The notes beneath the pieces are model-generated. The model was not told the DNA's origin. It saw only the letters and a program-made list of their open reading frames with translations, and ran no database searches. The translations under genes and the position numbers were made by a program. Below, one piece after another: positions 17,856-62,485 of a stretch of DNA of 64,000 nt (its first letter is position 1; every line of letters starts with the position of its first letter). Source of the DNA: Heteronotia binoei (lineage: Eukaryota); contig NC_083237.1 of assembly GCF_032191835.1 (NCBI RefSeq), positions 41,850,001 to 41,914,000 on the forward strand. Direction: 5' to 3'.

Positions 17856-17985
17856 AGTGTAATGAGATGAGTGTGGGTCTGTGAGAGCCCTCCTGACCCC
17901 ATCAAACACACCACAATAGAGCTCAGCTAAGGGCAGGTGTTGATATTACTCATTTGCAAGGTGGCATGCTTTGGCAGATACAGCT

Positions 17986-20562: not shown

Positions 20563-20779
20563 AAAGTGCCATCATGTCACAGCCAATTTATGGCAACCAC
20601 ATAGGGTTTTCAGTGTAAGAGACTTCAGAGGTGGTTTGCCATTGCCTACTTCTGCATAGTAACTTCCTTAGTGGTCTCCATCCAAGTACTAACCAGAACC
20701 ATCCAAGTATTAACCAGGACCAAACCTGCTTAGGTCCCAGAATCTGATAAGGCTAGTCTGGGTTATCAAAAGTCAGGGC
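20563..20779 (-). mobile_element. 5S-derived SINE with internal 21-bp duplication
   Basis: ggtctccatccaagtactaaccag is 5S reverse complement, catccaagtaytaaccagrac occurs twice at 20679-20720, tail gaggtggtttgccattgcc. Confidence 0.75.
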
Positions 20780-24293: not shown

Positions 24294-25439
24294 AAGATCC
24301 ACTCCAAAGATCTGTGGGTGGTACATTATGTTGTGGATTAATATGAGTATTCATTAATGTGTTTGTGTATGTGTGTGTTGCAGTTCAATTAATTAAAATC
24401 AATTTCACCTTATCATAGATTACAAAAGAGATGCAAAATCCAACACTTCATATTCAGTGCAGCTTATATAAACTCATATAAATGTATGCATGGTGGCATA
24501 TGGAATCAGAGTGATATCACATGATTCCATAGTCTTACGAGTGGAACATTTGCTAGCATATTAAACATTTTGCATGTGTTGCTTCTATTATTCTGGAAGA
24601 TCAGGTTTGTTCTTACTCTGGAAGGCAAAGGATATTCTCTGGGAAAAAAGGGAGATATTATTGCCTTTCTGGGAGCCAGTGTGGTGTAGTAGCTAGGAAC
24701 TGAATTATGACTGGAGACACCCAAGTTCAAATTACCACATAGCCAAAAAGCCAGGCATTTTCTCCCAGTGCCTCTTGGTAAGGATATAATAGAAAGGAGA
24801 AACATGTATGGCATTCTGAGTTCTTGGTAGTAACAGTGGGATTAAAATGTAGCAAAAAGCAACTGTGAACAGCATTTGAGTTCAAACAAATGTACCCTAT
24901 TTGCTTTGAACAGAAGATAACTCCCTTAGAAAAAAGAAGTGGCTATACATAAAAAGTATACCTGGAACTGAAGATGACCCTCCCCCAAAGAGACAAGCCA
25001 GCTAGCTACAGGTATCATCCTCCAACTAACCTCTATCTTTCCAGCCTCACCCATACCCCAAGTTACAAGTGGGCTTCATAGCCATAGCAACCATGACATC
25101 TGACATTGCCTCTGTGCCTCTCTACCAGTCCAATCAATTTGGAACCAGAAAGCATGAATGAAGGGAGTGCATGCCTTTTTTCCCCTCCATGATTTCTGGT
25201 AGTCAGGAAACAAGAAGAAAAAGATTGCACTGCCATAACTTCCAGCCTGTGTGAATGAACTGCCTATCCTCTTGTCTCTGTCTGTCCATCCCTCTTGTCT
25301 CTCTCAAGCACATTTCACTCCCCGGAGTTCTAATCAAGTGATGCACAGAGAGCTGTAATGTTCTGATGAGATGGCTTGGCTGGAGTTGTCAAAACATGAT
25401 GCTGCAAGTAGCTCATTGCTCCAAAAAGCTCTAATATTT

Positions 25440-25810
25440 ATAACAGTTTAAATGTGCTGTCCCCCTCCTTATTTAACTTCTATATCAATGATTTGGCGTC
25501 GCATATAAATAAACCTTTATGCTGATGATGCTATTTTACTTTCAAGGACTCCCTTAGGCCTCAGAAGAGCCTTGAAAGTTTTCGCTCAATATTGCCTGGA
25601 AAACAATCTAGAGGTAAATTATGCTAAAACCAAAGCAGTGGCCTTTGGCAAAAAGACACCCAGATCACACCATTGGTACTTAAATTCTATTCCCATTGAA
25701 CAAGTTTCATGCTTTAAGTACCTGGGGGTCATGTTTCAAGCGAATGGAAGAACCACCAATATAAATATGATTACCTCAAATGTGAAAAGGATTGCGGGGG
25801 CTTTAATATT
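25440..25810 (+). mobile_element. Old RTE-X-like LINE RT fragment interrupted by an L2
   Basis: LSPSLFNFYINDL...LYADDAILLSRTPLGLRRALKVFAQYCLENNLEVNYAKTK. Clade assignment from motif memory only. Confidence 0.6.
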
Positions 25811-28800
25811 TAATGAAGACCAACAGATCTGAGGGGAGGCGTTAGATCACGCCCACCAATATGTGACTAGTGATGGGCTAGCAGTGATCCAGCTCAGGGG
25901 GCAAAGCTCTCCTCCACCACTCATGGCTTCTAGGCCACAAAAGAGCTGTAAGGAAATACTATAGCCCCATGTTCCTAACTGACAGGTACCTTTGCCTCAA
26001 GTAGTACGTGTATTGGCATGCGTGACCGAGACCTGGGTGCGTGACGGGGAGACTGTAGCTCTCTCCCAGATGGCGCCCCCAGGATACTCGGTCTTTCACC
26101 AGTCACGGATTAGCGAGCGGGAAGGAGGGGTGGCTCTATTCATATGAGAGGCTTACTCCTTCCGGGCTCTCCCGGCCCTGAAGATTGAGGGCATTGAATG
26201 TGCCGGTCTGGCGTGGGACGTTGGGGAGGGGTTGGCGATCTGGCTGGTGTACCGACCACCTAACGCACCGGCTAGCGCCTTACTGTCCCTACTGGAGGCC
26301 GCAGCAGGCTGGGCATTGGAGTAATCGAGGCTCTTGATCCTCGGTGACTTCAATGTCCATGCCGATGACGCGACCTCCAGTCAGGCAATGGACCTGGTGT
26401 CATCCATGGCGACACTAGGACTCTCCCAAATTGTTACAACACCCACCCACCAGGCGGGGCACATGTTAGACTTGATCTTCACGGCGGGAGTTTTAGTGGA
26501 CGATGTTACTGCTGAAGCAGTGCCATGGTCGGACCACTATGCCCTCAAGGCTCATGTGGATGTCCCACCCCAAGCCCGTTTAGGCGGCGAGCGTATTTTA
26601 GCTTGCCCGCGGAGCCAGATGGATCCGGAACGGTTCCTGATGGCTCTACGGGATCCCTGGCGGTTCCTTGGATGACTTGGTAGAGTCTTGGAATGATAGG
26701 CTCTCCCGGGCCATCGACGAGATCGCACCTAGGCGCCCTCTGCGCCCCTGCCAAAAGTCGGCACCCTGGTATAACCAGGAGTTGCGGCAATTAAAGTGTG
26801 GACTCAGACGGCTAGAGAGGCAATGGCGGCATACTCGAGACGAAGCGATCAGAACATCTTATAGAGAAGTAATGAAGTCCTATGAGATGGCAGTCAAGGC
26901 CACAAAGAAAACATACTTTACGGCTAAGATTGCATCTGCAACTTCGCGCCTGGCACAACTGTTTAGTACAATTCAGACCCTTATAACTCTGCCACAAGGC
27001 AGACCAAATTCTAAAGAATTGGAGATTGGCTGTGAGGCTTTTGCGAACTTTTTTGCAGATAAGGTCGCATCGCTCCGCCACGACTTTCCCGCCATATTGG
27101 AGACAGTATGTGAACCTGAGGCTCCGTGCCGGTCTTCAGAGTGTGTCCTGGATGGTTTCAGTGCTCTCAGTCTGGAGGAAGTTGACAGGATCCTCGCATC
27201 TGCTCGCCCTACAATTTGTAATCTGGACCCCTGCCCCTCCTGGCTTATTAAAGCTTGCCAGAGGGAGCTTAGATATCCTGTATGGGATATCATAAACAGA
27301 TCCCTGATGGAAGGGCATTTTCCAGCACCTCTGAAAGAGGCTGTGGTCCGCCCTCTATTGAAGAAACCAACGTTAGATCCTGCCGAATTGATACACTATC
27401 GACCGGTTTCGAATGTACCCTTTTTGGGTAAACTCATTGAGAGGGCAGTGGCATTGCAGTTGCAGAGCTTTCTGGAGGATGCTTCCGTTCTTGACCCCCA
27501 TCAGTCCGGTTTCCCTCCGGGTCATGGGACGGAGATGGTGCTGGTCACTCTGATGGATGACCTCCAGCGGCATCTGGATCGAGGCGGCTCGGTGGTGCTG
27601 GTGTTGTTGGACCTATCGGCAGCGTTCAATACAGTCGACCACCGGCTGCTGACCCGTTGTCTCGCCGACGTGGGGATTCAGGGGTTGGCCTTACAGTGTT
27701 TCTCCTCGTTCCTTGATGGTCGGGGACAAAGGGTGGCAATTGGGGGTGAGCTGTCCCAGAGGCACACACTGGGGTGCCTCAGGGGGCAGTTCTTTCCCCA
27801 ATGCTGTTTAATATTTACATGCGCCCTCTTGCCCAGATTGCTCGGAGGCATGGGCTGGGTTGTCACCAGTATGTTGATGACACCCAGCTCTATCTACTCA
27901 TGGACGGCCGGCCTGACTGTGTCCCAGAAAACCTGGGCTGGGCATTACAAGCCGTGGCTAGATGGCTCAGGCTGAGTAGGCTGAAACTAAATCCAGCGAA
28001 GACAGAGGTCCTTTGCTTGGGTCGCCGTGGTCTGGGCGGGGGAATTCCCCTTCCAGCCCTTGACGGTGTGCCACTGACAATGGCACACTGGGTCAGGAGC
28101 TTGGGGGTACTACTTGAGCCTGCCTTAACTATGGAGGCCCAGGTAGCAGCCACTGCTAAGTCCGCTTTTTTTCATCTTAGGCGGGCGAGGCAGTTGGCTC
28201 CCTTCCTAGAGCAGGACAATCTAGCAACAGTGATCCATGCAACGGTCACCTCAAGGTTGGATTACTGTAATGCCCTCTACATGGGGCTGCCCCTGTGCCG
28301 AACCCGGAAGTTGCAGCTAGTGCAGAACGCCGCTGCCCGGCTGCTATTAGGGCTCCCTAGACGGGAGCACATTCAGTCGGGCCTCCAGGGACTGCACTGG
28401 CTGCCGATAATATACCGAGTCTGGTACAAGGTGCTGGTTATTACCTTTAAAGCCCTATATGGTCTAGGACCTGCCTATCTTAGGGACCGTCTCTTCCCAT
28501 ATGTTCCCCAGAGAGTACTGTGATCAGGCTCCCAAAATCTGCTCGTAATCCCCAGACCAAAGGAGGCCTGGCTGAAGTCAACCAGAGACAGGGCCTTCTC
28601 CATAACAGCCCCTTGCTGGTGGAACCAGTTATCGGAAGAGGTCAGGGCCCTGTGGGATATTGGACAATTCCGCAGGGCCTGTAAGACAGTCCTCTTCCAG
28701 TTGGCCTATAACTGACCGGCACTAAAACTGAAACTAAAACTATGAAAACATCGAAGGAAGTTATAGATAGCACATTGTGGATTTATGTACTGATTTTAAT

Positions 28801-29596: not shown

Positions 29597-30094
29597 GCGT
29601 GTGAAAAAACTTTTCCTGAAACTGAGATGATGTGTCCACAATGTCATTATTGGCTTCTGCAATATAGCATGCTGAAAAGCCATGATAGGAAGAATCTGTG
29701 AACCAGACACATAACCTGTTCAAAGCCTGAAAACTGCCAATTAATGACCCTGCCAATGGCTTGGTTATAGCACAAAAAAAGGACCTGTCTATTCTGAAAC
29801 AAATTCCTCCACATAATAACTGCTGCAAAATAGGGGGATTAAAAAAAAAAAAGATTTTCTCTTAATATGTCTGACATGGCCCATTGTGGTGCCCAATGCC
29901 TGAAAGAGCAGCACCCTGAAAAATATATCCTGAAACCTAGACTGCCCAATGCATCATTATGACCCAGAAGGCTGCCTTCAGACACAATTGCCATAGGGAC
30001 ATCCTATTGAAATGTTTCAGAAAGGTGAGCAAAATCCATTGGTCCTCCCTGATGCCCTTTGTATCCCTGATATGGTGATGGGGAGTGTTAACTC

Positions 30095-30260
30095 CAGAAG
30101 TAGCCCAAGCAAGACATCAGATCTCAGAAGCTAAGCAGAGCTGACCCTAGAAAGTACTTGGATGGGAAATCTCCACCAGAGGCAGGCAATAGCAAGCCAC
30201 CTCTCTGAATGTCCAAGCCCCTCTGGAGTTGCCAGAAGTCAACTATAACTTCCAGGCATG
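30095..30260 (+). mobile_element. 5S-derived SINE
   Basis: cagatctcagaagctaagcagagctgaccctagaaagtacttggatggga followed by gaggcaggcaatagcaagccacctct. Confidence 0.75.
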
Positions 30261-31907: not shown

Positions 31908-34900
31908 TTTATTTATTTATTTATCTATTTATTTATTTACTTTAAATTTCTATCCCACTCCCTCCGCAAGCGGACTCAGGGCAGTTAACAATATTCATAT
32001 TTACAAGTTAAAACTAATAAACTATAATTACAATTTAAGACCATTATGTGGTGCTGTACCACTGCAATATAAGCGAGTTCTTCTTTTCTGATGGTGATCA
32101 TGTGGTATTGCAGCTCTATAATGATGTGGGGCGGCAGGCCTCCCCCAGTTAGATATTAAAGGCCTGTTGGAACAGTTCAGTTTTGCAGGTCCTGTGGAAG
32201 GTAGAGAGATCCTGCAGGGCCCTCACAACCTCTGGGAGGGCATTCCACATTTCTGGTGCTGCCACAGAGAAGGCCCGTGTATAGCATAGCTTAGCCTCCT
32301 TTGATCCAGGAACGGACAATAGATTTTGTGTCCCTGAACGCAGTGCTCTCTGGGGAACATACAGAAAAAGGTGGTCCCATAGGTAGTCAGGGCCCTGACG
32401 ATAAAGAGTTTTAAAGGTCAATACCAACACCTTGAAATGGACTCAGAACATAATAGGTAGCCAGTGCAGCTCTTTCAGCACTGGCTGAATGTGCTCTCAA
32501 TGAGAGAGCCCCATTAATAGCCATGCCACAGCGTTCTACACTAGCTGTAGTTTCCGAGTCAGGGTCAAGGGTAGCCCCATGTAGAGAGTATTACAGTGAT
32601 CTATTCTCGAGGTGACCGTAGCATGGATCACCATTGCTAAGTCATCGTGCTCCAAGAAAGGGGCCAACTGCCACACCCGCCGAAGATGAAAAAAGGTGAA
32701 TCTGGTAGTGGCTGCTACCTGGGCCTCCATTGCAAGAGAGGACTCCAGGAGCATGCCTAAGCTCTTAAGAACATAAGAGAAGCCATGTTGGATCAGGCCA
32801 ACGGCCCATTCATTCCAACACTCTGTGTCACAAGTGGCAAAAAAAATTATATATACACACACATTGTGGCTAATAGCCACTGATGGACCTGTGCTCCATA
32901 TTTTTATCTAAACCCCTCTTGAAGGTGGCTATACTTGTGGCTGCCACCACCTCCTGTGGCAGTGAATTCCACATGTTAATCACCCTTTGGGTGAAGAAGT
33001 ACTTCCTTTTATCCGTTTTAACCTGTCTGCTCAGCAATTTAATCGAATGCCCACGAGTTCTTGTATTGTGAGAAAGGGAGAAAAGTACTTCTTTCTCTAC
33101 TTTCTCCATCCCATGCATTATCTTGTAAACCTCTATCATGTCACCCCGCAGTCGACGTTTCTCCAAGCTAAAGAGCCCCAAGCGTTTCAACCTTTCTTCA
33201 TAGGGAAAGTGCTCCAGCCCTTTAATCATTCTAGCTGCCCTTTTCTGGACTTTTTGAGGTGCGGCGACCAGAACTGCACAGAGTACTCCAAATGAGACCG
33301 CACCATCGATTTATACAGGGGCATTATGATACTGGCTGATTTGTTTTCAATTCCCTTCCTAATAATTCCCAGCATGGCGTTGGCCTTTTTTATTGCAAAC
33401 GCACACTGTCTTGACATTTTCAGTGAGTTATCTACCACGACCCCAAGATCTCTCTCTTGGTCAGTCTCTGCCAGTTCACACCCCATCAACTTGTATTTGT
33501 AGCTGGGATTCTTGGCCCCAATGTGCATTACTTTGCACTCGGCCACATTGAACCACATCTGCCACGTTGACGCCCACTCACCCAGCCTCAACAGATCCCT
33601 TTGGAGTTCCTCACAATCCTCTCTGGTTCTCACCACCCTGAACAATTTAGTGTCATCCGCAAACTTGGCCACTTCACTGCTCACTCCCAACTCTAAAACA
33701 TTTATTAACAAGTTAAAGAGCATGGGATCCAGTACCGAGCCCTGCGGCACCCCACTGCTTACCGTCCTCCACTGCGAAGACTGCCCATTTATACTCACTC
33801 TCTGCTTCCTATTACTCAGCCAGTTTTTGATCTACAAGAGCACCTGTCCTTTTACTCCATGACTCTCAAGCTTTCTAAGGAGCCTTTGATGAGGAACTTT
33901 ATCAAAAGCTTTCTGGAAGTCTTGACCTTAGGGGCCAGTATCAGCGGCACCCTGTCAAAAGCCGGCAAAGGAATCTCCCCCCTTGGACCACCCCGGCTCA
34001 GATAGAGAACCTCCGTCTTTGTCAGCTTCAGCTTCAACCGACTCAGCCTGAGCCAAGATGCTACAGCTTGAAGAGCCAGGTCTAGATTTTCCAGGGTACA
34101 GTTGGACTGGGCACCCATCAATAGATAGAGCTGGGTGTCGTCTGCATATTGGTGACAACTCAGCCTATACCTCCTGACAATCTGTACAAGGGGGTGCATA
34201 TAGATGTTGAATAGCATTGTGGACAGAACCGCACCCTGTGGCACACCACATATAAGTGGGTGCCTTTGGGATGATTCCTCCCTTATCATCACCCTTTGTC
34301 CCCGACCTTAGAGAAAGGAGGCCAACCCTGTAAGGTGGATCCCTGAATCCCCACATCGGCAAGGCAGTTAGTCTGTAGCTGATTGTCAACTGTATCAAAT
34401 GTGACTGATAGATCTAATAATAACAGCACCGCTGAGCCGTCCCGATCCAGATGTCGCATGAGGTCATCTATGAGGGTGACCAGAACTGTCTCCATCCCGT
34501 GACCTGGTTGAAAGCCAGACTGGAATGGATCCAGTGCGGAAGTGTCATCCAGGAATCCCTGTAGTTGAGTTGCCACTTCTCCCTCTATAACCTTATCCAA
34601 AAAGGGAAGGTTTGATACAGGCTGATAATTTTCCAATACGACCGGATCTGCAAATGGTTTTTTCAAGAGGGGACAGACCACAGCCTCTTTAAGAGGTGTG
34701 GAAAAGATCCCTTCTACGAAGAATCTGTTGACAATACCCTGCAGTCGCTCACGTAGCGATGCCTGGCTAGCTTTTATAAGCCAGCACAGGTCGTAGGGCG
34801 TACAGCAAAAAAGGATCCTGTTACCTCCTTCAGGCTGAGAGGAGTGAAGGAATCCAAAAATGGACCAGAAGACGTGCTCAGTGCCTCGAGTTCTTTCACA

Positions 34901-37075: not shown

Positions 37076-37290
37076 TTTGAACACAAGAAGCTGCCTTCTA
37101 CTGAACCAGACCCCCCTGGGTCCATCAAACTCAGTTTTGTCTATTCAGACTGACAGTGGCTCTCCAGGGTCTCAAGCTGAGGTTTTTCACACCTACTTGC
37201 CTGGACCCTTTTAGTTGGAGATGCCGGGGATTGAAACTGGGACCTTCTGCTTACAAAGCAGATGCTCTACCACTGAGCCACCATCCCTCC
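37076..37290 (-). mobile_element. tRNA-derived SINE with CR1-type tail (Squam2-like)
   Basis: Reverse complement ggagggatggtggctcagtggtagagcatctgc...aggtcccagtttcaatccccggcatctcc...gatggaccc...gtagaaggcagcttc. Confidence 0.75.
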
Positions 37291-38850: not shown

Positions 38851-39780
38851 TCAAAATTTTCTGTTAAACAGTTTCTTCAGGCAAACCTTCACCTCTCTGC
38901 TTCTCAAGCTATAAACAATGGGGTTAAGCATTGGTATTAAAATGGTGTAGAACAAAGACAGCCATTTGTTGATATCTATTGTCTCTTTTGATCTGGGACT
39001 CAGATAAACAATAGTTGCTGAACCATAGAATAAAGATACCATAATGAGGTGTGAGGAGCAAGTAGCAAACACTCTCTTACGACCTTCTACTGAAGGCATC
39101 TTCAGAATGGCAGCGATTATCTAAACATAAGAAGCAAGGATAAGGAAAAAAGGGAAGATTAGGATAATTGTGGTAGCTGCAAACATATAAACTTCATTTA
39201 CAAAAATGTCAGCACATACCAACTCCAACACTGGAGGAAGATCACAGTAGAAGTTGTTGATTTCATGAGAGCCACAAAAGGGCAAGATGAACAGTAGGTA
39301 CACCTGCACCACATGCACAGGCATGTTGATAGTCAATGACCCAGTAACAAGTCTTAAACAGAGCTCCTTGTTCATGATAACTTTATAATGTAAAGGGTGA
39401 CATATGGCCACATATCGGTCATAAGCCATTGCCGTCAGAAAGAAACACTCAGTGCTTGCTAGGACAAACAAGAAATACATTTGGAGAGCACAGCCAATAA
39501 AGGAAATGTTCTTTTTTTCTGCCAGAAAATTAACCAGCATCTTTGGGAGGGTGACTGAGGTGTAGCAGATCTCAAGAAATGACAGATTCTTCAGAAAGAA
39601 ATACATTGGACTATCAAGAGCAGTATCAGTCACTGTAATGTAAATGACAAGTCCATTTCCTAATATGATTTCCATGTAGATGAAAAGGAACACCACAAAG
39701 AGCAGAACCTGTAGAATGGGGAATTCAGAGTATCCAAGGAGAATGAAGTCGGACAGTGCAGTATGATTCTCTGTCATCAT
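38851..39780 (-). pseudogene. Olfactory receptor pseudogene with one in-frame premature stop (paralog of 4640-5569)
   Basis: MMTENHTALSDF...LASYV-TAG(39123-39121)-IIAAILKMPSVEG...NPIVYSLRS. Reading frame is preserved across the stop. Confidence 0.93.
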
Positions 39781-39967
39781 TGTTGGTTGTAACTGCTCTA
39801 GAATTGTGAGAACAGGGAACAAATATTAATCAATCCCAAACAACTTTGTTATAATTTCCCAAGATCAGAAATTGTGTCCTGCTAGTTTTTCTACTGATTA
39901 GAGAGGGAGATTTGACCACTTTGAAAACTGTTTTACACATGATTTAGCATAAGCAAGCATACTTTCT

Positions 39968-46025: not shown

Positions 46026-46952
46026 ATGAATAAGACTTCCATCACCCATTTCAATTTTCTTGGATTTCCCAGCTATTTGGAAGTGCAGATTCTCATGTTT
46101 ATTCTGCTTTCTGCTGTCTATGCAGTCACTGTAACTGGTAATTGTCTCATCATCCTTATTACATGGGCTGACATGACCCTTCATACACCTATGTACTTCT
46201 TTCTGAGAATCTTGTCATTTCTGGAGATCTGCTACATCTCTGTCACCCTCCCCAAGATGCTACACGACTTGGTCTCAGAGGACAAGTCCATCTCATTCAG
46301 TGGGTGTGCTGCCCAGATGTATTTTATCTTGTTCTTGGGGACAGTTGAGTGTTTTCTTTTGGCCTCCATGTCTTATGATCGCTGTGTTGCAATATGCCTC
46401 CCTTTGCATTATACAGTGCTAATGTCCAAAGGAGTTTGTATCTATCTGACTTTGGCTTCATGGATGGGTGGCATTCTTATCCCACTGGTGAACACAACCT
46501 GGGCATTTAGTTTGCCCTACTGTGGCTCTAACAAGATCAACCATTTCTTCTGTGACTTCCCACCAGTTCTGAAGCTAGCCTGTGCTGACACATCTCTGAA
46601 TGAGACAGTGATGCTAGTGAGCAGTTTAGTCATCACTCTGATACCTTTCATCTTCATACTGGCATCCTATACCTGCATCCTGAGCACTATATTAAGGATT
46701 CCTTCATCTGAAAGTAGACATAAAGTGTTCTCCACATGTTCTTCACATCTCATCATGGTGACCCTTTTCTACGGCTCGGCCAGCTTTATGTACTTACATC
46801 CCAAATCCAGTTATTCTTTGGAACGAGACAAATTCCTCTCTCTTTTTTACACAGTGGTAACACCAATGCTAAATCCTATCATCTATAGCTTGAGAAACAG
46901 TGAAGTAAAAAAGTCCCTAGCAAGAATGTTTAAAAGGAAAATATTGTCCTAG
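46026..46952 (+). CDS. Olfactory receptor, family-10-like, intact 308 aa
   Basis: NKT sequon, LHTPMYFFL, FSGC, MSYDRCVAIC, NHFFCDFPPVLKLAC, KVFSTCSSHL, PMLNPIIYSLRN. Confidence 0.95.
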   Translation: MNKTSITHFNFLGFPSYLEVQILMFILLSAVYAVTVTGNCLIILITWADMTLHTPMYFFLRILSFLEICYISVTLPKMLHDLVSEDKSISFSGCAAQMYFILFLGTVECFLLASMSYDRCVAICLPLHYTVLMSKGVCIYLTLASWMGGILIPLVNTTWAFSLPYCGSNKINHFFCDFPPVLKLACADTSLNETVMLVSSLVITLIPFIFILASYTCILSTILRIPSSESRHKVFSTCSSHLIMVTLFYGSASFMYLHPKSSYSLERDKFLSLFYTVVTPMLNPIIYSLRNSEVKKSLARMFKRKILS

Positions 46953-47315
46953 GAAATTGTTCTAATATAGGGATCAAATGTGTCAGACAGCAGAATACTG
47001 GTAATTGTATTATATGTAATAGAAATATGTCTGTCAGTCAAATGTACCTTCCTAACTATACTATCTATATCCTAAGCATGGTCAATAAGAACTCATTAGA
47101 TTTATTGAGAACTAATCCACATTTATGAAGTTCTCCAGATGTGGATATGTGCAAGGTTTTCATGTCATGTAATATTATTTTGAGCATACACGTAATCCCT
47201 ATCTTCACAAGGTTCATTCAAAAGGATAAATATAACAATGAAGTAAGCAAAAATAATTCCCATGGATATAGTGGCTTATGCTGTGATTACAAGAATTTTC
47301 ACTGACTGGATAAAT

Positions 47316-47501
47316 GTGCCAACTTATGTTGACCCCATAGGGTTCTCATGACAAGAGATGAATAGAGGTGGTTTGCCATTGCCTGCCACTGCCTTTAAAC
47401 TTCTATAATGGTCACCTAACCAAGTACTAATTAGGGCCAACCTTACCTAGCTTTCAAGACCTGATAGGATCAGGCTACCCTGGGTCATCCATGTCAGGGG
47501 G
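47316..47501 (-). mobile_element. 5S-derived SINE with 12-bp TSD
   Basis: GACTGGATAAAT at 47304-47315 and 47502-47513. Empty paralogous site at about 49655-49680. Confidence 0.85.
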
Positions 47502-53593: not shown

Positions 53594-54538
53594 CTATGAG
53601 GTACAATCAGGCTGACACGTTCCAAACAATTTTCTCAAGGAAACCTTCACTTCTGTGTTTCTCAGGTTATAGATGATGGGATTAAGCATAGGAATCAAAA
53701 TGGTGTAGAACAAGGAAAGCAATTTATTCACAATTAATGTCTCTTTTGACCTGGAACTTACATAGACAATAGTTGCTGACCCATAGAAAAGGGATACCAC
53801 AATAAGGTGTGAAGAACATGTAGCAAACAGTTTCTTCCAACCTTCAACTGAAGGCATCTTCAGAATTACAAAGATTATTTTGACATAAGAAGCAAAGATA
53901 GGACAAAAAGGGAGGACTAGGATTAATGCAGAGGCTGCAGCCATGTAAACTTCACTTGCAAAGGTATCTGCACAGGCCAGCTCCAGCACAGGTGGTATAT
54001 CACAGAAGAAGTTGTTAATTTCACAAGTGCTACAATAGAGCAAGGTAAACAGGAGGTATATCTGTCCTATATAGACAGGCATGTTGATGATCAATGCCCC
54101 TGTAACAAGTCCTAAACAGAGTTCTTTGCACATTATGAGTTTATAATGCAGGGGGTTACATATGGCCACATATCGGTCATAGGCCATGGTGGCCAGAAGG
54201 AAACACTCAGTGCCTCTGAGAAAAAGTACAAAGTAGATCTGAGCAGTCCAGCCAACAAATGAGATTGTCTTGTTTTGTGCCACAAAACTGACCAGTATTT
54301 TTGGAAGGGTGACTGAGGTGTAGAAGATCTCCAGGAAGGCCAGGCTCTTCAAAAAGAAATACATTGGAGTATCAAGGGAAGGATTAGTCACAATAATGTA
54401 AATGATAAGTACATTTCCTGTTATGATGGTCATGTAGATCAAGAGGAACACCACAAACAGCAACACCTGCAGAATTGGAAGTTCAGAATATCCAACAAAA
54501 ATGAAGTCAGATAATGCAGTATGATTCTCTTTTATCAT
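53594..54538 (-). CDS. Olfactory receptor, full-length 314 aa, possibly non-functional (C97W, Arg in TM3, foreign C-terminus)
   Basis: LDTPMYFFL, FVGW in place of FVGC, MAYDRYVAIC, FFCD, FATCSSH, PMLNPIIYNLRN. Confidence 0.85.
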   Translation of the reverse strand: MIKENHTALSDFIFVGYSELPILQVLLFVVFLLIYMTIITGNVLIIYIIVTNPSLDTPMYFFLKSLAFLEIFYTSVTLPKILVSFVAQNKTISFVGWTAQIYFVLFLRGTECFLLATMAYDRYVAICNPLHYKLIMCKELCLGLVTGALIINMPVYIGQIYLLFTLLYCSTCEINNFFCDIPPVLELACADTFASEVYMAAASALILVLPFCPIFASYVKIIFVILKMPSVEGWKKLFATCSSHLIVVSLFYGSATIVYVSSRSKETLIVNKLLSLFYTILIPMLNPIIYNLRNTEVKVSLRKLFGTCQPDCTS

Positions 54539-55363: not shown

Positions 55364-55407
55364 AAAAGGCCCTAGCAAGAATGTTTAAAAGGAATATATT
55401 GTCCTTG
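55364..55407 (+). pseudogene. Vestige of the last ~14 codons of an OR paralogous to 46026-46952
   Basis: aaaaggccctagcaagaatgtttaaaaggaatatattgtccttg matches the OR4 3' end, with no upstream ORF homology visible. Confidence 0.7.
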
Positions 55408-55456
55408 GATATTGTTTTAATATAGGGGTCAAATATGTCAGACTGGTAAGTGTATT

Positions 55457-55870
55457 GCCCCCCCATTCGGAATAAAGAGACATACAACAAGTTGGGATGA
55501 AGGGCCACTTTATTGAATTTATGGCAATGGGGAAAAAACCTGGGGCCAGGCTGAGCCAGGGGTCAACACCAAGACCACCTCCCCAACCTGAAACAGGGCG
55601 AGCCACAGGCCCCGGGATTGAGCCGACCCAACGGCTCAAAACCGGCCGGCCAGGCACCAGATCCAGTCCGCACGAGCTCCACCCTCCCCGTGCCGTACAG
55701 CCTGGGCTGTGGACCACTCCCTAATGACTGGATCACCAGGCTTCCCTGGAGCCAACCTTGCGCCGTACAGCATAGGTTCCCCAGGTAGGCCCTGCACCCC
55801 CAAAGGTGCGTTGCCATGTGCGCTCACCGAAATGCCCCGAATAGAACATGTCCCCAAGGGTAAACCTGCC
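55457..55870 (-). repeat. B2 repeat (414 bp), 3' terminus of the element
   Basis: No difference found versus 56210-56623. Minus-strand AATAAA at 55514-55509. Confidence 0.93.
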
Positions 55871-56039
55871 CGTGACCGCCTATGAACAGCACCGCCAAAA
55901 CCAATTGCCAACACACCTCCAGCAGTGTAAGGTAGGCGAAAACACTTCCAAACCGGCCAATCATTTGGAAGCGAAAAATTCCTACCTGGCCCCGTAATGG
56001 CGACCAGCCTGTGCCTACACTGCATAAAGGGCGGGCGGG

Positions 56040-56206
56040 CCGAACAAACCTAAAACTAACTGCGCCACAAGGGGATGGGCCAGCCAATATAAGGCTGCCC
56101 GCCCCCATGCAGCAGGAGTAAACCATTGTCTCCCATCCTGCAGGGGAGGCAATGGACGGCCCCCAGCCTAAGGCGACCGATGGGTCGCTCGGCTGGGAAG
56201 TGCCGA
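56040..56206 (-). repeat. A2 repeat (167 bp)
   Basis: No difference found versus 62023-62189. Confidence 0.93.
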
Positions 56207-56209
56207 ATT

Positions 56210-56623
56210 GCCCCCCCATTCGGAATAAAGAGACATACAACAAGTTGGGATGAAGGGCCACTTTATTGAATTTATGGCAATGGGGAAAAAACCTGGGGCC
56301 AGGCTGAGCCAGGGGTCAACACCAAGACCACCTCCCCAACCTGAAACAGGGCGAGCCACAGGCCCCGGGATTGAGCCGACCCAACGGCTCAAAACCGGCC
56401 GGCCAGGCACCAGATCCAGTCCGCACGAGCTCCACCCTCCCCGTGCCGTACAGCCTGGGCTGTGGACCACTCCCTAATGACTGGATCACCAGGCTTCCCT
56501 GGAGCCAACCTTGCGCCGTACAGCATAGGTTCCCCAGGTAGGCCCTGCACCCCCAAAGGTGCGTTGCCATGTGCGCTCACCGAAATGCCCCGAATAGAAC
56601 ATGTCCCCAAGGGTAAACCTGCC
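56210..56623 (-). repeat. B1 repeat (414 bp)
   Basis: Copy of 55457-55870, joined to A2 through ATT at 56207-56209. Confidence 0.93.
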
Positions 56624-56645
56624 AAGGACAGCGCCAAGCCTCTGC

Positions 56646-57239
56646 TTAGGCGACTGACCCCCCACAAGACAGGACATGCTCTAACCCATGCCTAAGGTCG
56701 GCCAAAAAGACCTCATTGCCCTTCCTTGATAAGTGGACACCATCAGGCCTGTACAGTTCTGCCCGTTTGGCCCGAATGGATGGATGCGGAACATACTTTC
56801 CCAGACCCGCCTCCATGGCGATAAACAAGGCTCTGTTAGCCTTCATCCTTGCCCGCTCCAAGCCCTCGGGGTCCCAAGCCGCCCGCCACACCCGGCGCGG
56901 CAACATGGCCGACCACAGGACGAGGACGCCAGGCCACCTGCGCTTTATCAAGGTGATGTCATCACGGGCCTGAATTGACAGGGCCTTACCCTTGACTAGG
57001 CCCAGATCATTCTCACCCAAGTGAATCACCAAGATATGTGGGGGCAGGCCCCTCCTCTCCTTAAACAAAAGTGAGAGGAGTCCTGCCCACCTCATTCCAC
57101 GCCGGCCCTGCCACTCAATCGTGGCCTGCTCACTCAGGCCCAACTGAGATCCTCCTGGCATCCGACGTGCCTGATGTGCCGCCCAGAAGACAATACTGTG
57201 GCCGCAAATGAGGATCCTCCTCCTTCCCTGGCCAGCCAC
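56646..57239 (-). CDS. SGNH/GDSL hydrolase (esterase) domain ORF of the Ngaro element, no 5' AUG
   Basis: Block I ILICGHS, block II GMRW, block III HLGENDL, block V PDGVHLS. The track start is GTG. Confidence 0.88.
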   Translation of the reverse strand: MAGQGRRRILICGHSIVFWAAHQARRMPGGSQLGLSEQATIEWQGRRGMRWAGLLSLLFKERRGLPPHILVIHLGENDLGLVKGKALSIQARDDITLIKRRWPGVLVLWSAMLPRRVWRAAWDPEGLERARMKANRALFIAMEAGLGKYVPHPSIRAKRAELYRPDGVHLSRKGNEVFLADLRHGLEHVLSCGGSVA

Positions 57240-57306
57240 AGCACCTAAGAAGAAACGGTAAATATAATAACATTAATAACAACATAACTAATAACGCATT
57301 GCGTGC

Positions 57307-58248
57307 TTACGGCACCAGGGGGCGAATGTAAGACCTGAAGGCCCGGGACCTCCAACGGCCCACCCGGCGAATAGCATCGCCTCCATATCCCATAGCCGCG
57401 GCTGTGGAAGCCGCACCTATGCGGAAGGAGTGGGTACCAAACCTAACCCCACCAAGTCCCAACTTGTTTAACGCCCGGGAAGTGACGGCCCAAAACTGGA
57501 ACCGGGAAAGAGGGGAGCAGTCTTCATGGCAGAATAGCAAGCCGTTAGACTTACCACGCATGTCCAAATATAACTCCAAAGCCCGCACCGGGCATAACTC
57601 TTCCTCCGTACAAGGGCCCAGGGTGATCACACTCCCCCTCTGTTTCTGATCAGTTTTGGACCTGCGGACCCGGATGACAGCCTGTCCCCCAACCAAGCTG
57701 ACGTCATCCAGCATCAGGGCCCTACCGGACTCGTCGTTACGCGAGCAGGCCACCAACTCTGAGACCCGCAATGCCCCAAAAAATGCAGTTAACGCCGCTG
57801 CATGAAAGAGTGCCTGCTCGAAACTGGACCCACAAACTACTGCCCATGTGGAATGAAGACCCCGCAAGATAGATGGGGATATTGGGACCCTGGTGTCAAC
57901 CTGACGTCCCGCCTCGCGGGCCCATCCTTCCAACATTTTGGCAATGCGGAAGTCCTTAGTAAACTCTGGGAACCCCTTGGATCTGCTGGCGAAGGCCAAG
58001 CCCGCCAGTTGGCCCCTGATAGACTTAACGGACAGGCCACGTTCCTTCTGAAACACGCAATATTGTAACAACTGCTCGACTGGGGCCGGCCAACATGCCT
58101 CAAGCCCGGCACCTGCTCTGAACATGGAAAACTGCTTAGCCGCACGGTCATATGCCCTCCTTGTACTGGGTGCAACCGAGAGTTGAATGGCCCGTGTCAC
58201 TTCTTCCCTCCAATTCGCCACAGCTCCGCGGGCATTGGCACGGGACAA
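57307..58248 (-). CDS. Tyrosine recombinase
   Basis: APSTRRAY N-terminal helix and catalytic set FGALRVSEL (R), RSKTDQ (K), HSFRIG (H-x-x-R), GRW (W), SYIR (Y). The track start is TTG. Confidence 0.95.
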   Translation of the reverse strand: MSRANARGAVANWREEVTRAIQLSVAPSTRRAYDRAAKQFSMFRAGAGLEACWPAPVEQLLQYCVFQKERGLSVKSIRGQLAGLAFASRSKGFPEFTKDFRIAKMLEGWAREAGRQVDTRVPISPSILRGLHSTWAVVCGSSFEQALFHAAALTAFFGALRVSELVACSRNDESGRALMLDDVSLVGGQAVIRVRRSKTDQKQRGSVITLGPCTEEELCPVRALELYLDMRGKSNGLLFCHEDCSPLSRFQFWAVTSRALNKLGLGGVRFGTHSFRIGAASTAAAMGYGGDAIRRVGRWRSRAFRSYIRPLVP

Positions 58249-60047
58249 CTGTCGGCCTCCGGGGCGAGTTGGCGGAACCGCTCCATCTGTTGGCGAGACA
58301 GGGCGTCCGCCACTCCGTTATTGGACCCCGGTACATGCCGGGCGGCAAAAAGCACATTCAGTTCAAGACAGCGCAAGGTAAAACGCCTAACCAAACCCAT
58401 AACGGGGGGGGACCTGGACGTAAGGTTATTGACAACATGCACAACAGCCATGTTGTCGCACCAAAAGTGCACCGTATGATTGGCCAAGTCCCTCCCCCAA
58501 ATAAAAACGGCTACAACAATCGGAAAAAACTCCAAAAATGCTAAGTTGCGGATCAAATCGGAGGAGCGCCATTCAGCCGGCCACGGTTCGGCGCACCACT
58601 GGCCCCGAAAATAGACTCCAAATCCGGTGGAGCCTGCAGCATCTGAAACAATCTGCAGTTCGGCCTCTAGCAACATGGCCTCCCGCCAAAAGGATGTCCC
58701 GTTGTAATGGCGGAGGAAAGACTCCCACACCTCCAAATCCTCACGCATACGCCGAGTTACGCGCGTGACATGGTGAGGCGAGCGCAACGCGGTCATGCCG
58801 TCGCAAAATTGCCTCAAAAAGGCTCGGCCGGGAGCAACCACCTTGCATGCAAAGTTCAAATGGCCGACTAGCTGTTGCAGTTCGACCAACGAGACTTTCT
58901 TCCTCCCCTTCAAGGCAGTGACCATTTCCCGCATATTGCGCAGCTTATCCGGGGGCAGTCGCGAAGCCTGCTGGATAGTGTCCAATTCTATACCTAAGAA
59001 AGTTAACACCGTCGCGGGGCCCTCAGTTTTCTCTGGTGCCAGAGGCACGCCCAGTTCCGCCGCAAGCCGCTCAAACGACCGCAACAAGTAAGCACATTGG
59101 CCAGAACCCGCGGGGCCCACAAACAAAAAATCATCAAGATAGTGCGCCGTGTCGCGCAAGCCCGTCCTAAACTGCAGTGCCCACTCCAGGAACGAACTAA
59201 AACGCTCAAAGGCGGAACAAGATACAGAACATCCCATCGGGAGGGCCCTGTCCATATAAAAACTACCCTCAAAACAAAACCCCAACAATTCAAAGTCCTC
59301 AGGGTGCACGGGCAGCAAACGAAAAGCCGACTTGATGTCACATTTGGCGACCTCCGCGCCAAGCCCACAATGCCGCACTATACGCACTGCCCGATCAAAG
59401 GAGGTGTACCTAACCGAGCAAAGCTCGTCGGGGATGGCATCATTAACCGACTGGCCCCTTGGATATGACAAATGATGTATCAGCCGGTACTCACCCCTTG
59501 CCTTCTTAGGTACCACCCCTAACGGGGAGACCCTCAAATTAGGCACTGGTGGCTCGGCGAAGGGGCCCAAAACCCGGCCCTCTGCGCACTCCTTCCGAAT
59601 CTTGTCCCGCACAACATGTTCTAACCCCTTAACAGACCTCAAATTAGAACACATGAAGGGGGTACGAGGACCTTGGTATGGAATCCGGAACCCAAATTCG
59701 AAACCTTCCAACAAATAACGCTTGTCCTCCAAACGTGGGTAATAGCGTAAAAACTCAGTGAGAACCGCTATCCTGATGGGGCTGGGCCCCTTTTCCAGGC
59801 GGCTGATTAGAGCCTCCGGGCCTCTTAAAACCCCCTCTCTGCTTGGACTTACTACATGCCGTGAAAGCATGAGGACCTCCGCACACCGGGCATTCGTGCC
59901 GGTACCTGCAAAACTTCCTAGAGCACGCCCCCTGGGAGGTAAACTCCCAACAGAGCAGCCGGGGTTGAACCGACTGCCCCGCGGGCACGCGGGTGCCGGC
60001 GGGATGACTGGATTTCTGGACGATGTGGCCGCTGTCCGATCTCTCAC
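58197..60047 (-). CDS. pol: Reverse transcriptase + RNase H (pol), first AUG at 59870
   Basis: SPLGVVPKK, YRLIHHLS, KCDIKSAFR, LPMG, HYLDDFL, TFLGIELD, VSDAAG, LAFLEF, CDNMAVV, ADALSR. No stops. Confidence 0.95.
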   Translation of the reverse strand: MRDRTAATSSRNPVIPPAPACPRGSRFNPGCSVGSLPPRGRALGSFAGTGTNARCAEVLMLSRHVVSPSREGVLRGPEALISRLEKGPSPIRIAVLTEFLRYYPRLEDKRYLLEGFEFGFRIPYQGPRTPFMCSNLRSVKGLEHVVRDKIRKECAEGRVLGPFAEPPVPNLRVSPLGVVPKKARGEYRLIHHLSYPRGQSVNDAIPDELCSVRYTSFDRAVRIVRHCGLGAEVAKCDIKSAFRLLPVHPEDFELLGFCFEGSFYMDRALPMGCSVSCSAFERFSSFLEWALQFRTGLRDTAHYLDDFLFVGPAGSGQCAYLLRSFERLAAELGVPLAPEKTEGPATVLTFLGIELDTIQQASRLPPDKLRNMREMVTALKGRKKVSLVELQQLVGHLNFACKVVAPGRAFLRQFCDGMTALRSPHHVTRVTRRMREDLEVWESFLRHYNGTSFWREAMLLEAELQIVSDAAGSTGFGVYFRGQWCAEPWPAEWRSSDLIRNLAFLEFFPIVVAVFIWGRDLANHTVHFWCDNMAVVHVVNNLTSRSPPVMGLVRRFTLRCLELNVLFAARHVPGSNNGVADALSRQQMERFRQLAPEADSCPVPMPAELWRIGGKK

Positions 60048-61245
60048 CTGCGTTAGGCTTAGCAGGAGCCATAAGCTGTAGCCAGAGCTGCTGGCTGATC
60101 TGATCCCAAGGAAGATTGGGATTCACAGCGGCCCTCATCCGGAAGGCCTCGTCATACTGAAGCCAGGCCCCTCCCACAAAATCACTGTAGGCGCGATAAA
60201 TAATATCGCAATACTGAAACAGCGGAGCCGCACGCCAAGGCTGAGCCCTGGCAATCACTCCCGCATAAATTAAGAACCCTGGCAACCAATTGGACCAGGA
60301 CCGATCAATTTTTCTCTTTCTAAGCTTCTCCTTATCCTTTTCGTCCATTTCTTCCTTCGGCTTTTTCTCCAACTCCCTAAACAGTAGACTAAAAACGTCC
60401 ACATACTCGCCTTTCAATATCTTTTCTCTAGTCGCCGCCGTAAGGTGATCGCCTAGCGGTAAAGCCGAATCGCCAAAGGGAATGGCGTGGAAAGGAACTG
60501 AAGCATAGGCAAAAGAGGGGTGGGCGGGAAACCCCAACCCTCCCCACTGTTGAGCATGCCACGGAACTGCAGGTGACCAAGCAGTCTGGGAGCCCCAGGG
60601 AAGGGCGCCACCTCCTAAAGGGTTCGAAACACCCCCAGTAACATTAGGTTGGCCCCCTGCCATGGATGACGACGCAAAGGCAGATACCGTTCCTGGTTGC
60701 CCCTGCATTCCGGGCAGGAGGGATGGCCACATCACCTGAGACTGCTGGCCCGACTGGGCACCCCCTACCGGGCATTGAAAACCCAGCCCTTGTGTTGGCA
60801 GAGTTGAACCCGCCCCAGGTCCTACCACAGGGCCCCACGGGCCCCAAGGCCACACCCCATCACGAGGCTGCAATGGGCACCTACCTTCCTGCTGATGTGG
60901 AACCACCGCCACCTCCTCAGGCTCCTGCCCTTGTTCCTCTTCCGGCGTCACCTGGTCTGACGTCTCACTGCTCCCCGCACCCTGTAGGGCAGATAAACGC
61001 GCCAGAACTTCCTTTTGAAATGCAATGGTCGCCGCCCTGCCGCCGCCCGTTAAACCTGAAACGCGCCGTGAAGGGCCCGCAACACCCTTTTCACCCTCCA
61101 ATGCAGCCAAGCTTTCAAGAATAGCCAGGCGCGTGCTGGCGTCATCCCAATCATCGCTAGGGGGCTCGGCAGGGACTGGCCGTTTTGCAGGCTTTTTTGC
61201 CGGCTGTTTCCCCTTCGAGGGGCCCTGGCCCTTCTTTGGCCCCAT
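59755..61245 (-). CDS. gag: Gag-like ORF1 with C-terminal CCCH/CCHC zinc fingers
   Basis: ATG start, Lys-rich N-terminus, PG-rich linker, WLQYDEAFRMRAA-type core, CWEFTSQGACSRKFCRYRHECPVCGGPHAFTAC. Confidence 0.88.
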   Translation of the reverse strand: MGPKKGQGPSKGKQPAKKPAKRPVPAEPPSDDWDDASTRLAILESLAALEGEKGVAGPSRRVSGLTGGGRAATIAFQKEVLARLSALQGAGSSETSDQVTPEEEQGQEPEEVAVVPHQQEGRCPLQPRDGVWPWGPWGPVVGPGAGSTLPTQGLGFQCPVGGAQSGQQSQVMWPSLLPGMQGQPGTVSAFASSSMAGGQPNVTGGVSNPLGGGALPWGSQTAWSPAVPWHAQQWGGLGFPAHPSFAYASVPFHAIPFGDSALPLGDHLTAATREKILKGEYVDVFSLLFRELEKKPKEEMDEKDKEKLRKRKIDRSWSNWLPGFLIYAGVIARAQPWRAAPLFQYCDIIYRAYSDFVGGAWLQYDEAFRMRAAVNPNLPWDQISQQLWLQLMAPAKPNAGERSDSGHIVQKSSHPAGTRVPAGQSVQPRLLCWEFTSQGACSRKFCRYRHECPVCGGPHAFTACSKSKQRGGFKRPGGSNQPPGKGAQPHQDSGSH

Positions 61246-62022
61246 CTCTCAATTAATTGATGCCCTGCCCCCGCCCAACTGTAGCTGGACGTGGAGCTTT
61301 GAAAACCCCCTCGGATACCGCCGTCTGCACCCACCCCCTGTTCAGCACAGCAGACCAATACAAAGCCCCAGCAACAGTCTTATCTATTCAGTCTGGCAGC
61401 AGCTCTCCAGAGGCTTGAGCTGGTGCCTTTCACTCCTTAACCCTCAGAGTTGGAGGTCCCGAGGACTAACCTGGGACCCTCTGCCCCCAAGCAGACACTC
61501 CACCCCTGAAACACCGTCTCTCCCTACCAATTGAGGGATGAGTATGATGCCCCCAGCCCCTTCAATAACCTGCACCAATAGCGCCCGCTACCAGGTGGGA
61601 GGGGGGAGGGGGGGGCAGGCTGGAGTGCCGATCGATAATAGGCCTAAGAAACTAAGAGGGTGGGGGGGCGTTAGGGCTGCTAAAGAAATCCCCTATGCCA
61701 CCGCCAAGCCGCTACTCCCTGAGGAAATCCACGCCGCCGCTCCGTCCGCCGCCCGAAGCTCCGACGGGCCTCAGCTGGCTCTTCCTCGTTGTCCGACTCC
61801 CCGCGCCGATCAGGGGCCGCGCCCACAAAACAGCCGCAGGCACCGGGGAAAAGCGCGACGCGCCGCTCCGATGCCTTTCGCTGCCCGAGTCCCGACCAGC
61901 TCTGGCTGTCAATCAACGCGACGACGCCGCAGGCCCCCGCCGCCGATCAGGAAGCGCTCTTCGCAACCGTCAGCGAGCCGGGCCCTAACGAAGACACTCA
62001 GCCACGCACAATCGTGGCTGCA

Positions 62023-62189
62023 CCGAACAAACCTAAAACTAACTGCGCCACAAGGGGATGGGCCAGCCAATATAAGGCTGCCCGCCCCCATGCAGCAGGA
62101 GTAAACCATTGTCTCCCATCCTGCAGGGGAGGCAATGGACGGCCCCCAGCCTAAGGCGACCGATGGGTCGCTCGGCTGGGAAGTGCCGA
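62023..62189 (-). repeat. A1 repeat (167 bp), 5' terminus of the element
   Basis: Copy of 56040-56206. Confidence 0.93.
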
Positions 62190-62485
62190 ATTATATGTAA
62201 TAGCAATATGTGCCTTCCTGACTATACTATCTATATCCTAAGCATGGTCAATGAGAACTCATTGGAAAGACTTCTTGAGAACTATTCCATGTTTATCAAG
62301 TTATCCAGGTATGGATTTGTGAGAGGTTTTCATGTCAAATATTATTATTTTGACCATACATGCAATCCCTATTCTCACCAGGTACATTCAGAAGGATAAC
62401 CGTAATAATGAAGTAATCAGAAATATTTTCTATGGATATAGTGCCTTATGCTGTGATGACAAGAATTTTCACTGACTGGATAAAT

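Follow-up and report, generated by a model that had tools for sequence, protein, structure and literature searches.

Ngaro elements are retrotransposons defined by a split-direct-repeat layout, A1...B1-A2-B2 (PMC9210276; PMC7192593). The traits attributed to Goodwin and Poulter (2004) in PMC9210276 are a tyrosine recombinase (YR) retrotransposon, split direct repeats and no methyltransferase. An open reading frame (ORF) for an SGNH hydrolase placed after the YR has been reported for Ngaro only, and only some Ngaro elements carry it (PMC9210276; PMC7192593). In Xenopus, a four-ORF Ngaro-like element with an SGNH ORF has split repeats of 236 and 152 bp that are 100% identical (PMC9210276). The published model for such elements is recombination at a 3-bp junction without target-site duplication (TSD) (PMC3266345; PMC7192593). 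We analyzed a 64,000-nt stretch of the Heteronotia binoei genome (the window; NC_083237.1, positions 41,850,001 to 41,914,000), where an initial annotation made from the sequence had described an apparently intact, very recently inserted Ngaro-type retrotransposon in an amniote olfactory receptor (OR) cluster. The analysis makes it very probable that this element is a young, structurally complete Ngaro-like copy, vertically inherited, from a gecko clade within a squamate-wide lineage that is sister to the SGNH-carrying amphibian Ngaro. The element represents a new gecko family of the known Ngaro kind, and one of its features, a conserved splice architecture, might be new to the field. No report of Ngaro in geckos was found in the searchable literature.

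Borders, repeats and composition of the element

Exact extension of repeat seeds yielded two pairs of direct repeats, one of 417 nt (B2 and B1, 55454–55870 and 56207–56623) and one of 170 nt (A2 and A1, 56040–56209 and 62023–62192). Both pairs are 100% identical, as the initial annotation had seen. Read on the element strand, the order of parts is 170-nt repeat, leader, ORF1, ORF2, ORF3, ORF4, 417-nt repeat, 170-nt repeat, spacer and 417-nt repeat (Table 1). The internal B1 and A2 copies share a 3-nt overlap (ATT on the plus strand, AAT on the element strand), and their junction, GGGGGGGC-AAT-TCGGC, contains exactly one AAT; we infer that this overlap is the image of a circle junction. The same ATT is present at both outer ends. 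The element is therefore real but wider than first drawn: it spans 55454–62192, with each end 3 nt outside the initial borders of 55457–62189.

A TATA-like motif (CCTTATATTGG) lies inside A1, about 50 nt from its 3′ end, and may act as a promoter. The repeat search found 0 inverted repeat pairs in the element, the element contains no Rfam family or tRNA, and the 64-kb window holds no other copy of it. The GC content of the element is 0.576 and its observed/expected (o/e) CpG ratio is 0.70, against 0.398 and 0.15 in the left flank and 0.412 and 0.13 in the right flank, in agreement with the earlier description of a CpG-rich element in a depleted background.

Coding capacity

Each of the four ORFs aligns unbroken and end to end with ORFs of an element from the gecko Eublepharis macularius. 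The ORF1 N-terminus has a basic stretch, an acidic stretch and two ILARLxALE-type helical motifs. After these come a P/G/Q-rich middle and a conserved helical domain, and then CCCH and CCHC zinc motifs that are invariant. A Pfam search of ORF1 found no domain. A structural model of its C-terminal domain (mean predicted local distance difference test score, pLDDT, of 66, with a helical core near 90) gave no significant match to the Protein Data Bank (PDB) with Foldseek, and this domain may or may not have a capsid-like fold.

ORF2 matches the Pfam reverse transcriptase (RT) family RVT_1 (2.4e-10). Among 25 aligned sequences of ORF2 relatives, D237 and Y303-L304-D305-D306 of the RT do not vary, nor do D469, E506 and D581 of RNase H; D531 is nearly invariant. 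A single-sequence phmmer search of the PDB with ORF2 returned nothing useful, while a family profile found the distantly related RTs of foamy virus and Ty3. AUG 59870 lies about 30 codons ahead of SRLEKGPSP, the conserved start, an arrangement also seen in the Eublepharis protein P0001, and is likely the start of ORF2.

ORF3 matches Phage_integrase (5.5e-6). It aligns in register with Cre at the Arg (ALRVSEL), Lys (RRSKT), His-x-x-Arg (HSFRIG) and Trp (GRW) positions; the Tyr (RSY) lies just past the Cre-aligned stretch and was taken from reading the sequence. ORF4 matches Lipase_GDSL_2 (3.9e-5), and its residues S15, G48, N77, D166 and H169 are conserved across 30 relatives. The AlphaFold (AF2) model of ORF4 (pLDDT 93.5) has an SGNH fold, with a template modelling (TM) score of about 0.74 to SGNH acylhydrolases. 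With the ORF4 family profile, the best match by sequence to a solved structure is PDB 4c1b, the esterase of ZfL2-1 ORF1p (E=1.2e-9). All of the catalytic motifs listed in the initial annotation (YLDD, RNase H D-E-D-D, recombinase R/K/HxxR/W/Y and the SGNH set) are thus present.

The statement that four ORFs run without breaks holds for the reading frames only. In both ORF3 and ORF4 the conserved N-terminal part, with the catalytic Ser15 in ORF4, precedes the first AUG of the frame, so that neither is a conventional AUG-initiated gene. The ORF4 frame opens past the end of ORF3, just 11 codons ahead of the SGNH domain.

Placement among tyrosine recombinase retrotransposons

The element has an A1...B1-A2-B2 arrangement with A1=A2 and B1=B2, and a tyrosine recombinase in place of a DDE integrase alongside RT/RNase H, as in the Ngaro/DIRS order. 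The initial assignment to Ngaro stands: split direct repeats and a gag-like, RT-RNase H, YR order occur together with an SGNH ORF like that of amphibian Ngaro. Pfam recognized no methyltransferase in any ORF, and there is no room left for one, with ORF2 ending 35 residues past the last RNase H Asp and ORF3 following.

The alternative is that the element belongs to another YR superfamily (DIRS1-like or PAT-like) or is a long terminal repeat (LTR) element or endogenous retrovirus. The distant relation of the RT profile to Ty3 and foamy-virus RTs is compatible with this, and PAT-like elements also have split direct repeats (PMC3266345). A DIRS1-like identity is contradicted by the missing methyltransferase and by the lack of inverted repeats, hence of inverted terminal repeats (ITRs) as well as of an internal complementary region (ICR). 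The split repeats alone would suit a PAT-like element, from which the missing methyltransferase again separates it. An LTR element or retrovirus is opposed by the absence of a terminal LTR pair, of a DDE integrase domain and of a TSD, which in those elements measures 4–6 bp. The SGNH ORF after the YR, reported for Ngaro only (PMC9210276; PMC7192593), points the same way, and we give a non-Ngaro identity next to no chance.

Integration site

A paralogue of the integration site, lying just downstream of an intact OR gene (46026–46952), lacks the insertion. This empty site reads ...GTAATTGT-ATT-ATATGTAATAG... with a single ATT, and the sequence of the filled site is ...GTAAGTGT-ATT[element]ATT-ATATGTAATAGC.... 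ATT therefore occurs once in the empty site and at each end in the filled site, and there is no TSD. At an unrelated locus, the Eublepharis element also has AAT on both sides. Such a footprint is expected from a tyrosine-recombinase crossover between the junction trinucleotide and an identical target trinucleotide. Because the paralogous site is empty, the insertion is younger than the local duplication.

The window contains five OR genes, four intact and one truncated, which corroborates the amniote OR cluster of the initial annotation, the host being Heteronotia binoei. Since the flanks of the element have a paralogue downstream of another OR, the local duplications by which the cluster grew predate the insertion. 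The left flank retains 80 nt (55364–55443) from the 3′ end of an OR gene on the plus strand (...KALARMFKRNILS). An intact 314-aa OR gene (53594–54538, minus strand) starts 916 bp past the 3′ end of the element on the same strand; the element thus lies in the upstream region of this gene and could matter for its expression. The truncated OR frame (39121–39822, minus strand; 233 aa, covering only positions 1–189 of 280 of 7tm_4) is 79% identical in DNA to this gene and is probably a pseudogene.

Under the DIRS/Ngaro model, the transcript would start inside A1 and end at the AATAAA in B2 (55514–55509), and RT/RNase H would copy it. The B1-A2 junction would supply the missing ends, giving a closed unit with a B-AAT-A junction, which in the model is a circular intermediate. 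The footprints suggest that the tyrosine recombinase would then join the AAT of this unit to a genomic AAT, leaving AAT on each side and no TSD.

Age and intactness

The 584 repeated nt contain 0 differences. At substitution rates of 2.4e-9 to 0.7e-9 per site per year, the 95% upper bound on the age of the insertion is ~1 to 3.7 million years, presuming repeat pairs that were identical at insertion and a correct assembly; the bound is lower if the 26 CpGs of the repeats mutate faster. The undecayed CpG and the insertion after the local duplication agree with this estimate, so that the youth claimed in the initial annotation is upheld, and a potentially active family is plausible.

The copy might only look intact, being inactive or non-autonomous with ORF3 and ORF4 devoid of an initiating AUG, or its perfect repeats might be an artefact of assembly or gene conversion. 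The first AUGs of ORF3 (58125) and ORF4 (57161) do fall inside conserved domains, and a scan of the ORF2/ORF3 overlap found no −1 slippery heptamer. The missing AUG is, however, common to relatives 36–68% identical with otherwise open frames, and is therefore a family trait under selection rather than decay. Conserved, phase-matched splice signals would offer an expression route (see below), identical repeat pairs recur in four further assemblies of different species (Eublepharis, Anolis sagrei and a frog among them), and the CpG is undecayed. We consider both versions, a copy that only looks intact and artefactual repeats, improbable.

Relatives and origin

The best database matches of ORF2 are from Eublepharis macularius (70–72% aa identity). 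Identities to other squamates (Anolis, Hemicordylus, Rhineura, Erythrolamprus and lacertids) are 54–64%, those to amphibians are ~46–53% and that to sea urchin is 48%; ORF2 clusters with identically organized proteins from Xenopus, other frogs and Lytechinus. Related elements were recovered from Eublepharis, Anolis sagrei, the frog Eleutherodactylus coqui, a Logan contig and a second H. binoei family (Table 1). This second family and the window element lie on the same chromosome, 6.5 Mb apart, and are ~66% identical in DNA. In H. binoei, the locus of the second family also contains fragments of a third copy (19851–20558 and 26125–27399) and a separate element (20558–25781) with identical direct repeats of at least 300 nt and a 1166-aa minus-strand ORF.

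The Anolis sagrei element sits in an intron of a glypican gene, its leader has seven copies of a 107-bp tandem repeat (4341–5282) and its termini overlap by GACAA instead of AAT. In the Logan contig and the second H. binoei family, the leaders contain tandem repeats rich in GGCGGCCATTTTG (509–878 and 17687–17947, respectively), a sequence that we take to resemble a YY1-type motif; leader repeats of this GCCATTTT type are absent from the window element.

In a maximum-likelihood tree of ORF2 proteins, the squamate elements form a clade (98/96) apart from the amphibian elements, and the window element groups with Eublepharis (95/90). An extended ORF2 tree unites the two H. binoei families with three Eublepharis proteins and the Logan contig in one clade with long internal branches. 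The comparison of RT and host phylogenies proposed in the initial annotation thus gives a tree that follows the hosts, with geckos inside squamates and amphibians outside. Its position in a gecko clade of the squamate lineage makes the element a vertically inherited resident and not a recent import.

Composition had been raised initially as a hint of horizontal acquisition. On this account, the GC/CpG-rich make-up would mark a foreign origin and a recent transfer into Heteronotia, in line with the contrast to the flanks (GC 0.576 against ~0.40, CpG o/e 0.70 against 0.13–0.15) and with searches of the protein collection, exact look-ups of ORF1 and ORF3 among them, which found no identical or near-identical H. 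binoei protein. The make-up is, however, GC-rich and CpG-rich in every relative examined, each in AT-rich, CpG-poor surroundings. The same contrast is seen in Eublepharis, in Anolis sagrei, in the second H. binoei family and in an unrelated long interspersed nuclear element (LINE) at 26–28 kb of the window; because it is common to the relatives and to this LINE, we attribute the composition to family habit and youth. High CpG is expected of any insertion too young for decay. The nearest relatives are gecko elements with just 68–72% aa identity and long branches, which fits old co-residence, and Ngaro protein fossils of pre-amniote age have been reported in the human genome (PMC9004415). Recent horizontal transfer is therefore very improbable, although transfer between closely related geckos is possible.

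The reading as a whole has some points to its disadvantage. The tree does not carry the reference RTs DrNgaro1 and LvNgaro2 under those names. The 169-nt spacer between A2 and B2 does not appear in schematic A1...B1A2B2 drawings; it is also present in the Eublepharis, Anolis and frog relatives. In DIRS-1 experiments the product was mainly linear single-stranded cDNA and junction PCR failed (PMC7192593), which tells against the circular step of the proposed cycle.

The surprise implied in the initial annotation at finding Ngaro in an amniote disappears in view of the pre-amniote fossils in human (PMC9004415) and of apparently intact squamate copies with identical repeat pairs. That Eublepharis and Anolis sagrei have comparable copies, also apparently intact, suggests that Ngaro elements with the potential to move persist in squamates. 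From birds and mammals, to our knowledge, Ngaro elements have been lost. The window element documents a structurally complete Ngaro in a gecko, and comparison with the empty site gives a clean footprint of integration at AAT of the recombinase type. Squamates could serve as models for a poorly understood transposition mechanism.

Predicted splicing of the accessory ORFs

Consensus phase-1 splice donors occur ~120–160 codons into ORF1, at an aligned position, in 4 elements (Table 1). The donor of the window element has the same position and phase as that of the second H. binoei family, which is used by the gene model P0147, and that of the Eublepharis element, seen at the P0127 junction. A phase-1 acceptor, a polypyrimidine tract with AG, immediately precedes the SGNH domain in 6/6 elements, from frog to gecko. 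Joining 61245–60885 to 57244–56646 in the window gives an open 319-aa coding sequence.

The H. binoei RefSeq model P0147 uses exactly the donor and acceptor of the second family, and RefSeq gene models with a fusion of the ORF1 N-terminal part (ORF1N) to SGNH exist in 13 genera. Models of ~304–420 aa come from Eublepharis, Paroedura, Rhineura, Elgaria, Hemicordylus, Pogona, Anolis sagrei, Bombina and Spea, and longer models, of 603 and 622 aa, from Xenopus and Eleutherodactylus.

A second candidate phase-1 acceptor, (Y)nCAG/ATGG (CAG/TGGG in frog), is conserved inside ORF2, in its 3′ end, at the place from which the ORF3 frame is open. Its use would yield an open 446-aa ORF1N-recombinase product in the window. 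Because the same nucleotides encode a conserved ORF2 segment, this second splice is speculative.

Taken together, these signals tentatively suggest that tetrapod Ngaro elements use retrovirus-like splicing, with one phase-1 donor in ORF1 joined to alternative phase-1 acceptors to give ORF1N-SGNH and perhaps ORF1N-recombinase; we hold this to be possible, at somewhat less than even odds. ORF1 and ORF2 would be made from full-length RNA. The SGNH hydrolase would come from spliced RNA, in which the first 120 ORF1 codons and the phase-matched acceptor give the 319-aa ORF1N-SGNH, and the recombinase may likewise be spliced as the 446-aa ORF1N-YR.

Several observations count against this splicing scheme. 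The fusion gene models are computational predictions, and Gnomon also made other, inconsistent chimeras at these loci (P0139, P0163, P0165 and P0002). In Anolis sagrei a simple pattern search found no strong phase-1 donor, and the ORF4 frame there has its own AUG. A search for intron-less, cDNA-type contigs encoding the fusion gave only genome-annotation models. An ORF1-ORF2 splice implied by P0002 was rejected as unreliable, as it removes the conserved SRLEKGPSP start of ORF2. For a 531-aa Anolis sagrei model that matches Phage_integrase and begins at the ORF1 AUG, no exon structure could be worked out.

A search of the literature found no description of such a splicing programme, although the founding Ngaro papers lie outside the searchable scope and may mention it. 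If splicing occurs as proposed, the accessory enzymes would have the N-terminal module of the Gag-like protein in common with it and might be taken up into one and the same particle. The splice signals offer a concrete, testable idea for the expression of the enigmatic SGNH esterase, which has no proven function, and the window copy, with all required signals intact, is a natural test object.

Many database entries named 'uncharacterized protein LOC...' are products of such elements, as are some misnamed RefSeq models (P0186, P0274 and P0320). The proteins of the Eublepharis element are annotated only in the former way. Residues 1–55 of an H. binoei 'semaphorin-6A-like' protein are 82% identical to ORF1, and 'filaggrin-2-like isoform X2' of Xenopus tropicalis and 'cyclin-dependent kinase 13-like' of Eleutherodactylus coqui are ORF1N-SGNH type proteins. 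These misnamed host-gene models are probably annotation artefacts or exonisations.

Table 1. Positions of the element and its parts in the window, and of related elements in their own sequences; a slash marks a predicted exon boundary
Feature	Position	Strand	Remarks
Whole Ngaro-like element	55454..62192	-	6,739 bp; ATT (AAT on element strand) at both ends
A1, 5′ split direct repeat	62023..62192	-	170 nt; same as 56040-56209
GC-rich leader, A1 to ORF1 AUG	61246..62022	-	777 nt
ORF1, gag-like	59755..61245	-	496 aa; starts at AUG; no Pfam or structural match
Predicted splice donor in ORF1	60879..60890	-	AAG/gtaggt; phase 1; intron starts 60884
ORF2, RT and RNase H	58197..60047	-	616 codons; overlaps ORF1 in +1 frame; first AUG 59870
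Second candidate acceptor (speculative)	58282..58300	-	ctcgccaacag/ATGG; phase 1; start of ORF3 coding region; exon would start 58286
ORF3, tyrosine recombinase	57307..58248	-	313 codons; frame open from 58317; first AUG 58125
Predicted acceptor ahead of SGNH domain	57240..57258	-	ccgtttcttcttag/GT (ttcttcttag/GT); phase 1; exon starts 57244
ORF4, SGNH hydrolase	56646..57239	-	197 codons; frame open from 57272; first AUG 57161
B1, internal repeat copy	56207..56623	-	417 nt; AATAAA at 56267-56262
A2, internal repeat copy	56040..56209	-	170 nt; overlaps B1 by AAT
Unique spacer between A2 and B2	55871..56039	-	169 nt
B2, 3′ terminal repeat copy	55454..55870	-	417 nt; AATAAA at 55514-55509, ~55 nt from element end
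Paralogous empty site	46909..47465	+	82-91% identical to joined flanks; single ATT at 47009-47011
Eublepharis macularius element (L002)	6808-13836		Repeat pairs 180 and 427 nt, 100%; four open ORFs; ORF1 donor CTG/gtaaga; SGNH acceptor ttctttcttttag/GT
Logan contig element (L003)			Repeat pairs not found; same four-ORF order; ORF1 donor TGG/gtaagt; SGNH acceptor ttttattacag/GT
H. binoei second family (L004)	9974-14509 in CM063339.1:35,299,024-35,326,441		Split repeats not detected; stop in ORF3; ORF1 donor GAG/gtaggt; SGNH acceptor ttctctttttag/AT
Anolis sagrei element (L005)	CM073872.1, 3032-11410		Repeat pairs 164 and 401 nt, 100%; four open ORFs; SGNH acceptor atcgttgcag/GT
Eleutherodactylus coqui (frog) element (L006)			Repeat pairs 206 and 627 nt, 100%; ORF1 frameshifted; SGNH acceptor ttattttacag/AT

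Other features of the window

Other retroelement sequences are scattered through the window. LINE-type RT ORFs (RVT_1) at 26668–28523 on the plus strand have a GC content of 0.55 and a CpG o/e of 0.66 and represent another comparatively young retroelement. Two more RT fragments (RVT_1) of non-LTR type are located at 1331–1843 (plus strand) and 33226–33798 (minus strand). Fragments of Retrotran_gag_2 and GAG-pre-integrase / Pol beta-barrel at 8491–10170 (plus strand) constitute an LTR/Copia remnant, and a fragment at 29677–30098 (minus strand), 37% identical to the RNase H part of ORF2, derives from an unrelated retroelement. A tRNA-Thr(TGT)-like sequence at 37216–37288 (minus strand; Rfam 46.9 bits; ARAGORN) could represent either a tRNA gene or the head portion of a tRNA-derived short interspersed nuclear element. 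A run of 154 N occupies 19343–19496.

Comparison with known systems

The nearest relative found is the Eublepharis element, with 49–68% identity per ORF. It shares with the window element the repeat layout, the GC/CpG contrast, the ORF1 donor position, the terminal sequences AATTCGGC... ...GGGGGGGCAAT and AAT at both ends. It is nevertheless a separate family, since the DNA of the two does not align at high identity, and in-frame AUGs lie upstream in its ORF4 frame, unlike in that of the window element.

The Xenopus Ngaro-like element has the same ORF order (gag-like, RT/RNase H, YR and SGNH), A1...B1A2B2 repeats and no methyltransferase, with only ~50% ORF2 identity to the gecko element. All of the Xenopus ORFs are said to overlap, whereas ORF3 and ORF4 of the gecko element are separated by 34 nt of closed frame. 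DrNgaro1 of zebrafish resembles the gecko element in the defining traits as these are described in PMC9210276.

DIRS-1 of Dictyostelium likewise combines RT/RNase H with a tyrosine recombinase, restores its ends from an internal image of the joined termini and integrates at a matching trinucleotide that then flanks both sides (PMC7192593). It differs in having inverted terminal repeats with an ICR and a methyltransferase, and no SGNH ORF (PMC7192593).

The nearest solved relative of ORF4 by sequence comes from outside the YR retrotransposons. The esterase of ORF1p of the zebrafish LINE ZfL2-1 (PDB 4c1b) has the same SGNH fold, with a sequence identity of only ~22%, and has been reported to bind lipids and liposomes (PMC3905857). 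This esterase is part of a non-LTR retrotransposon, and lipid binding and activity are known for ZfL2-1 only; by analogy (PMC3905857), the ORF4 esterase would bind or act on lipids or membranes. A shared ORF1 N-terminal module may anchor the esterase to the ORF1 particle, where it would serve a step involving membranes or lipids. ZfL2-1 ORF1p joins a coiled coil to its esterase, and the predicted spliced Ngaro product would join an N-terminal helical segment to an esterase. The ORF4 esterase is thereby linked to the LINE ORF1p esterase, and the spliced product, if it is made, would parallel the coiled-coil-plus-esterase ORF1p of CR1/L2-type LINEs.

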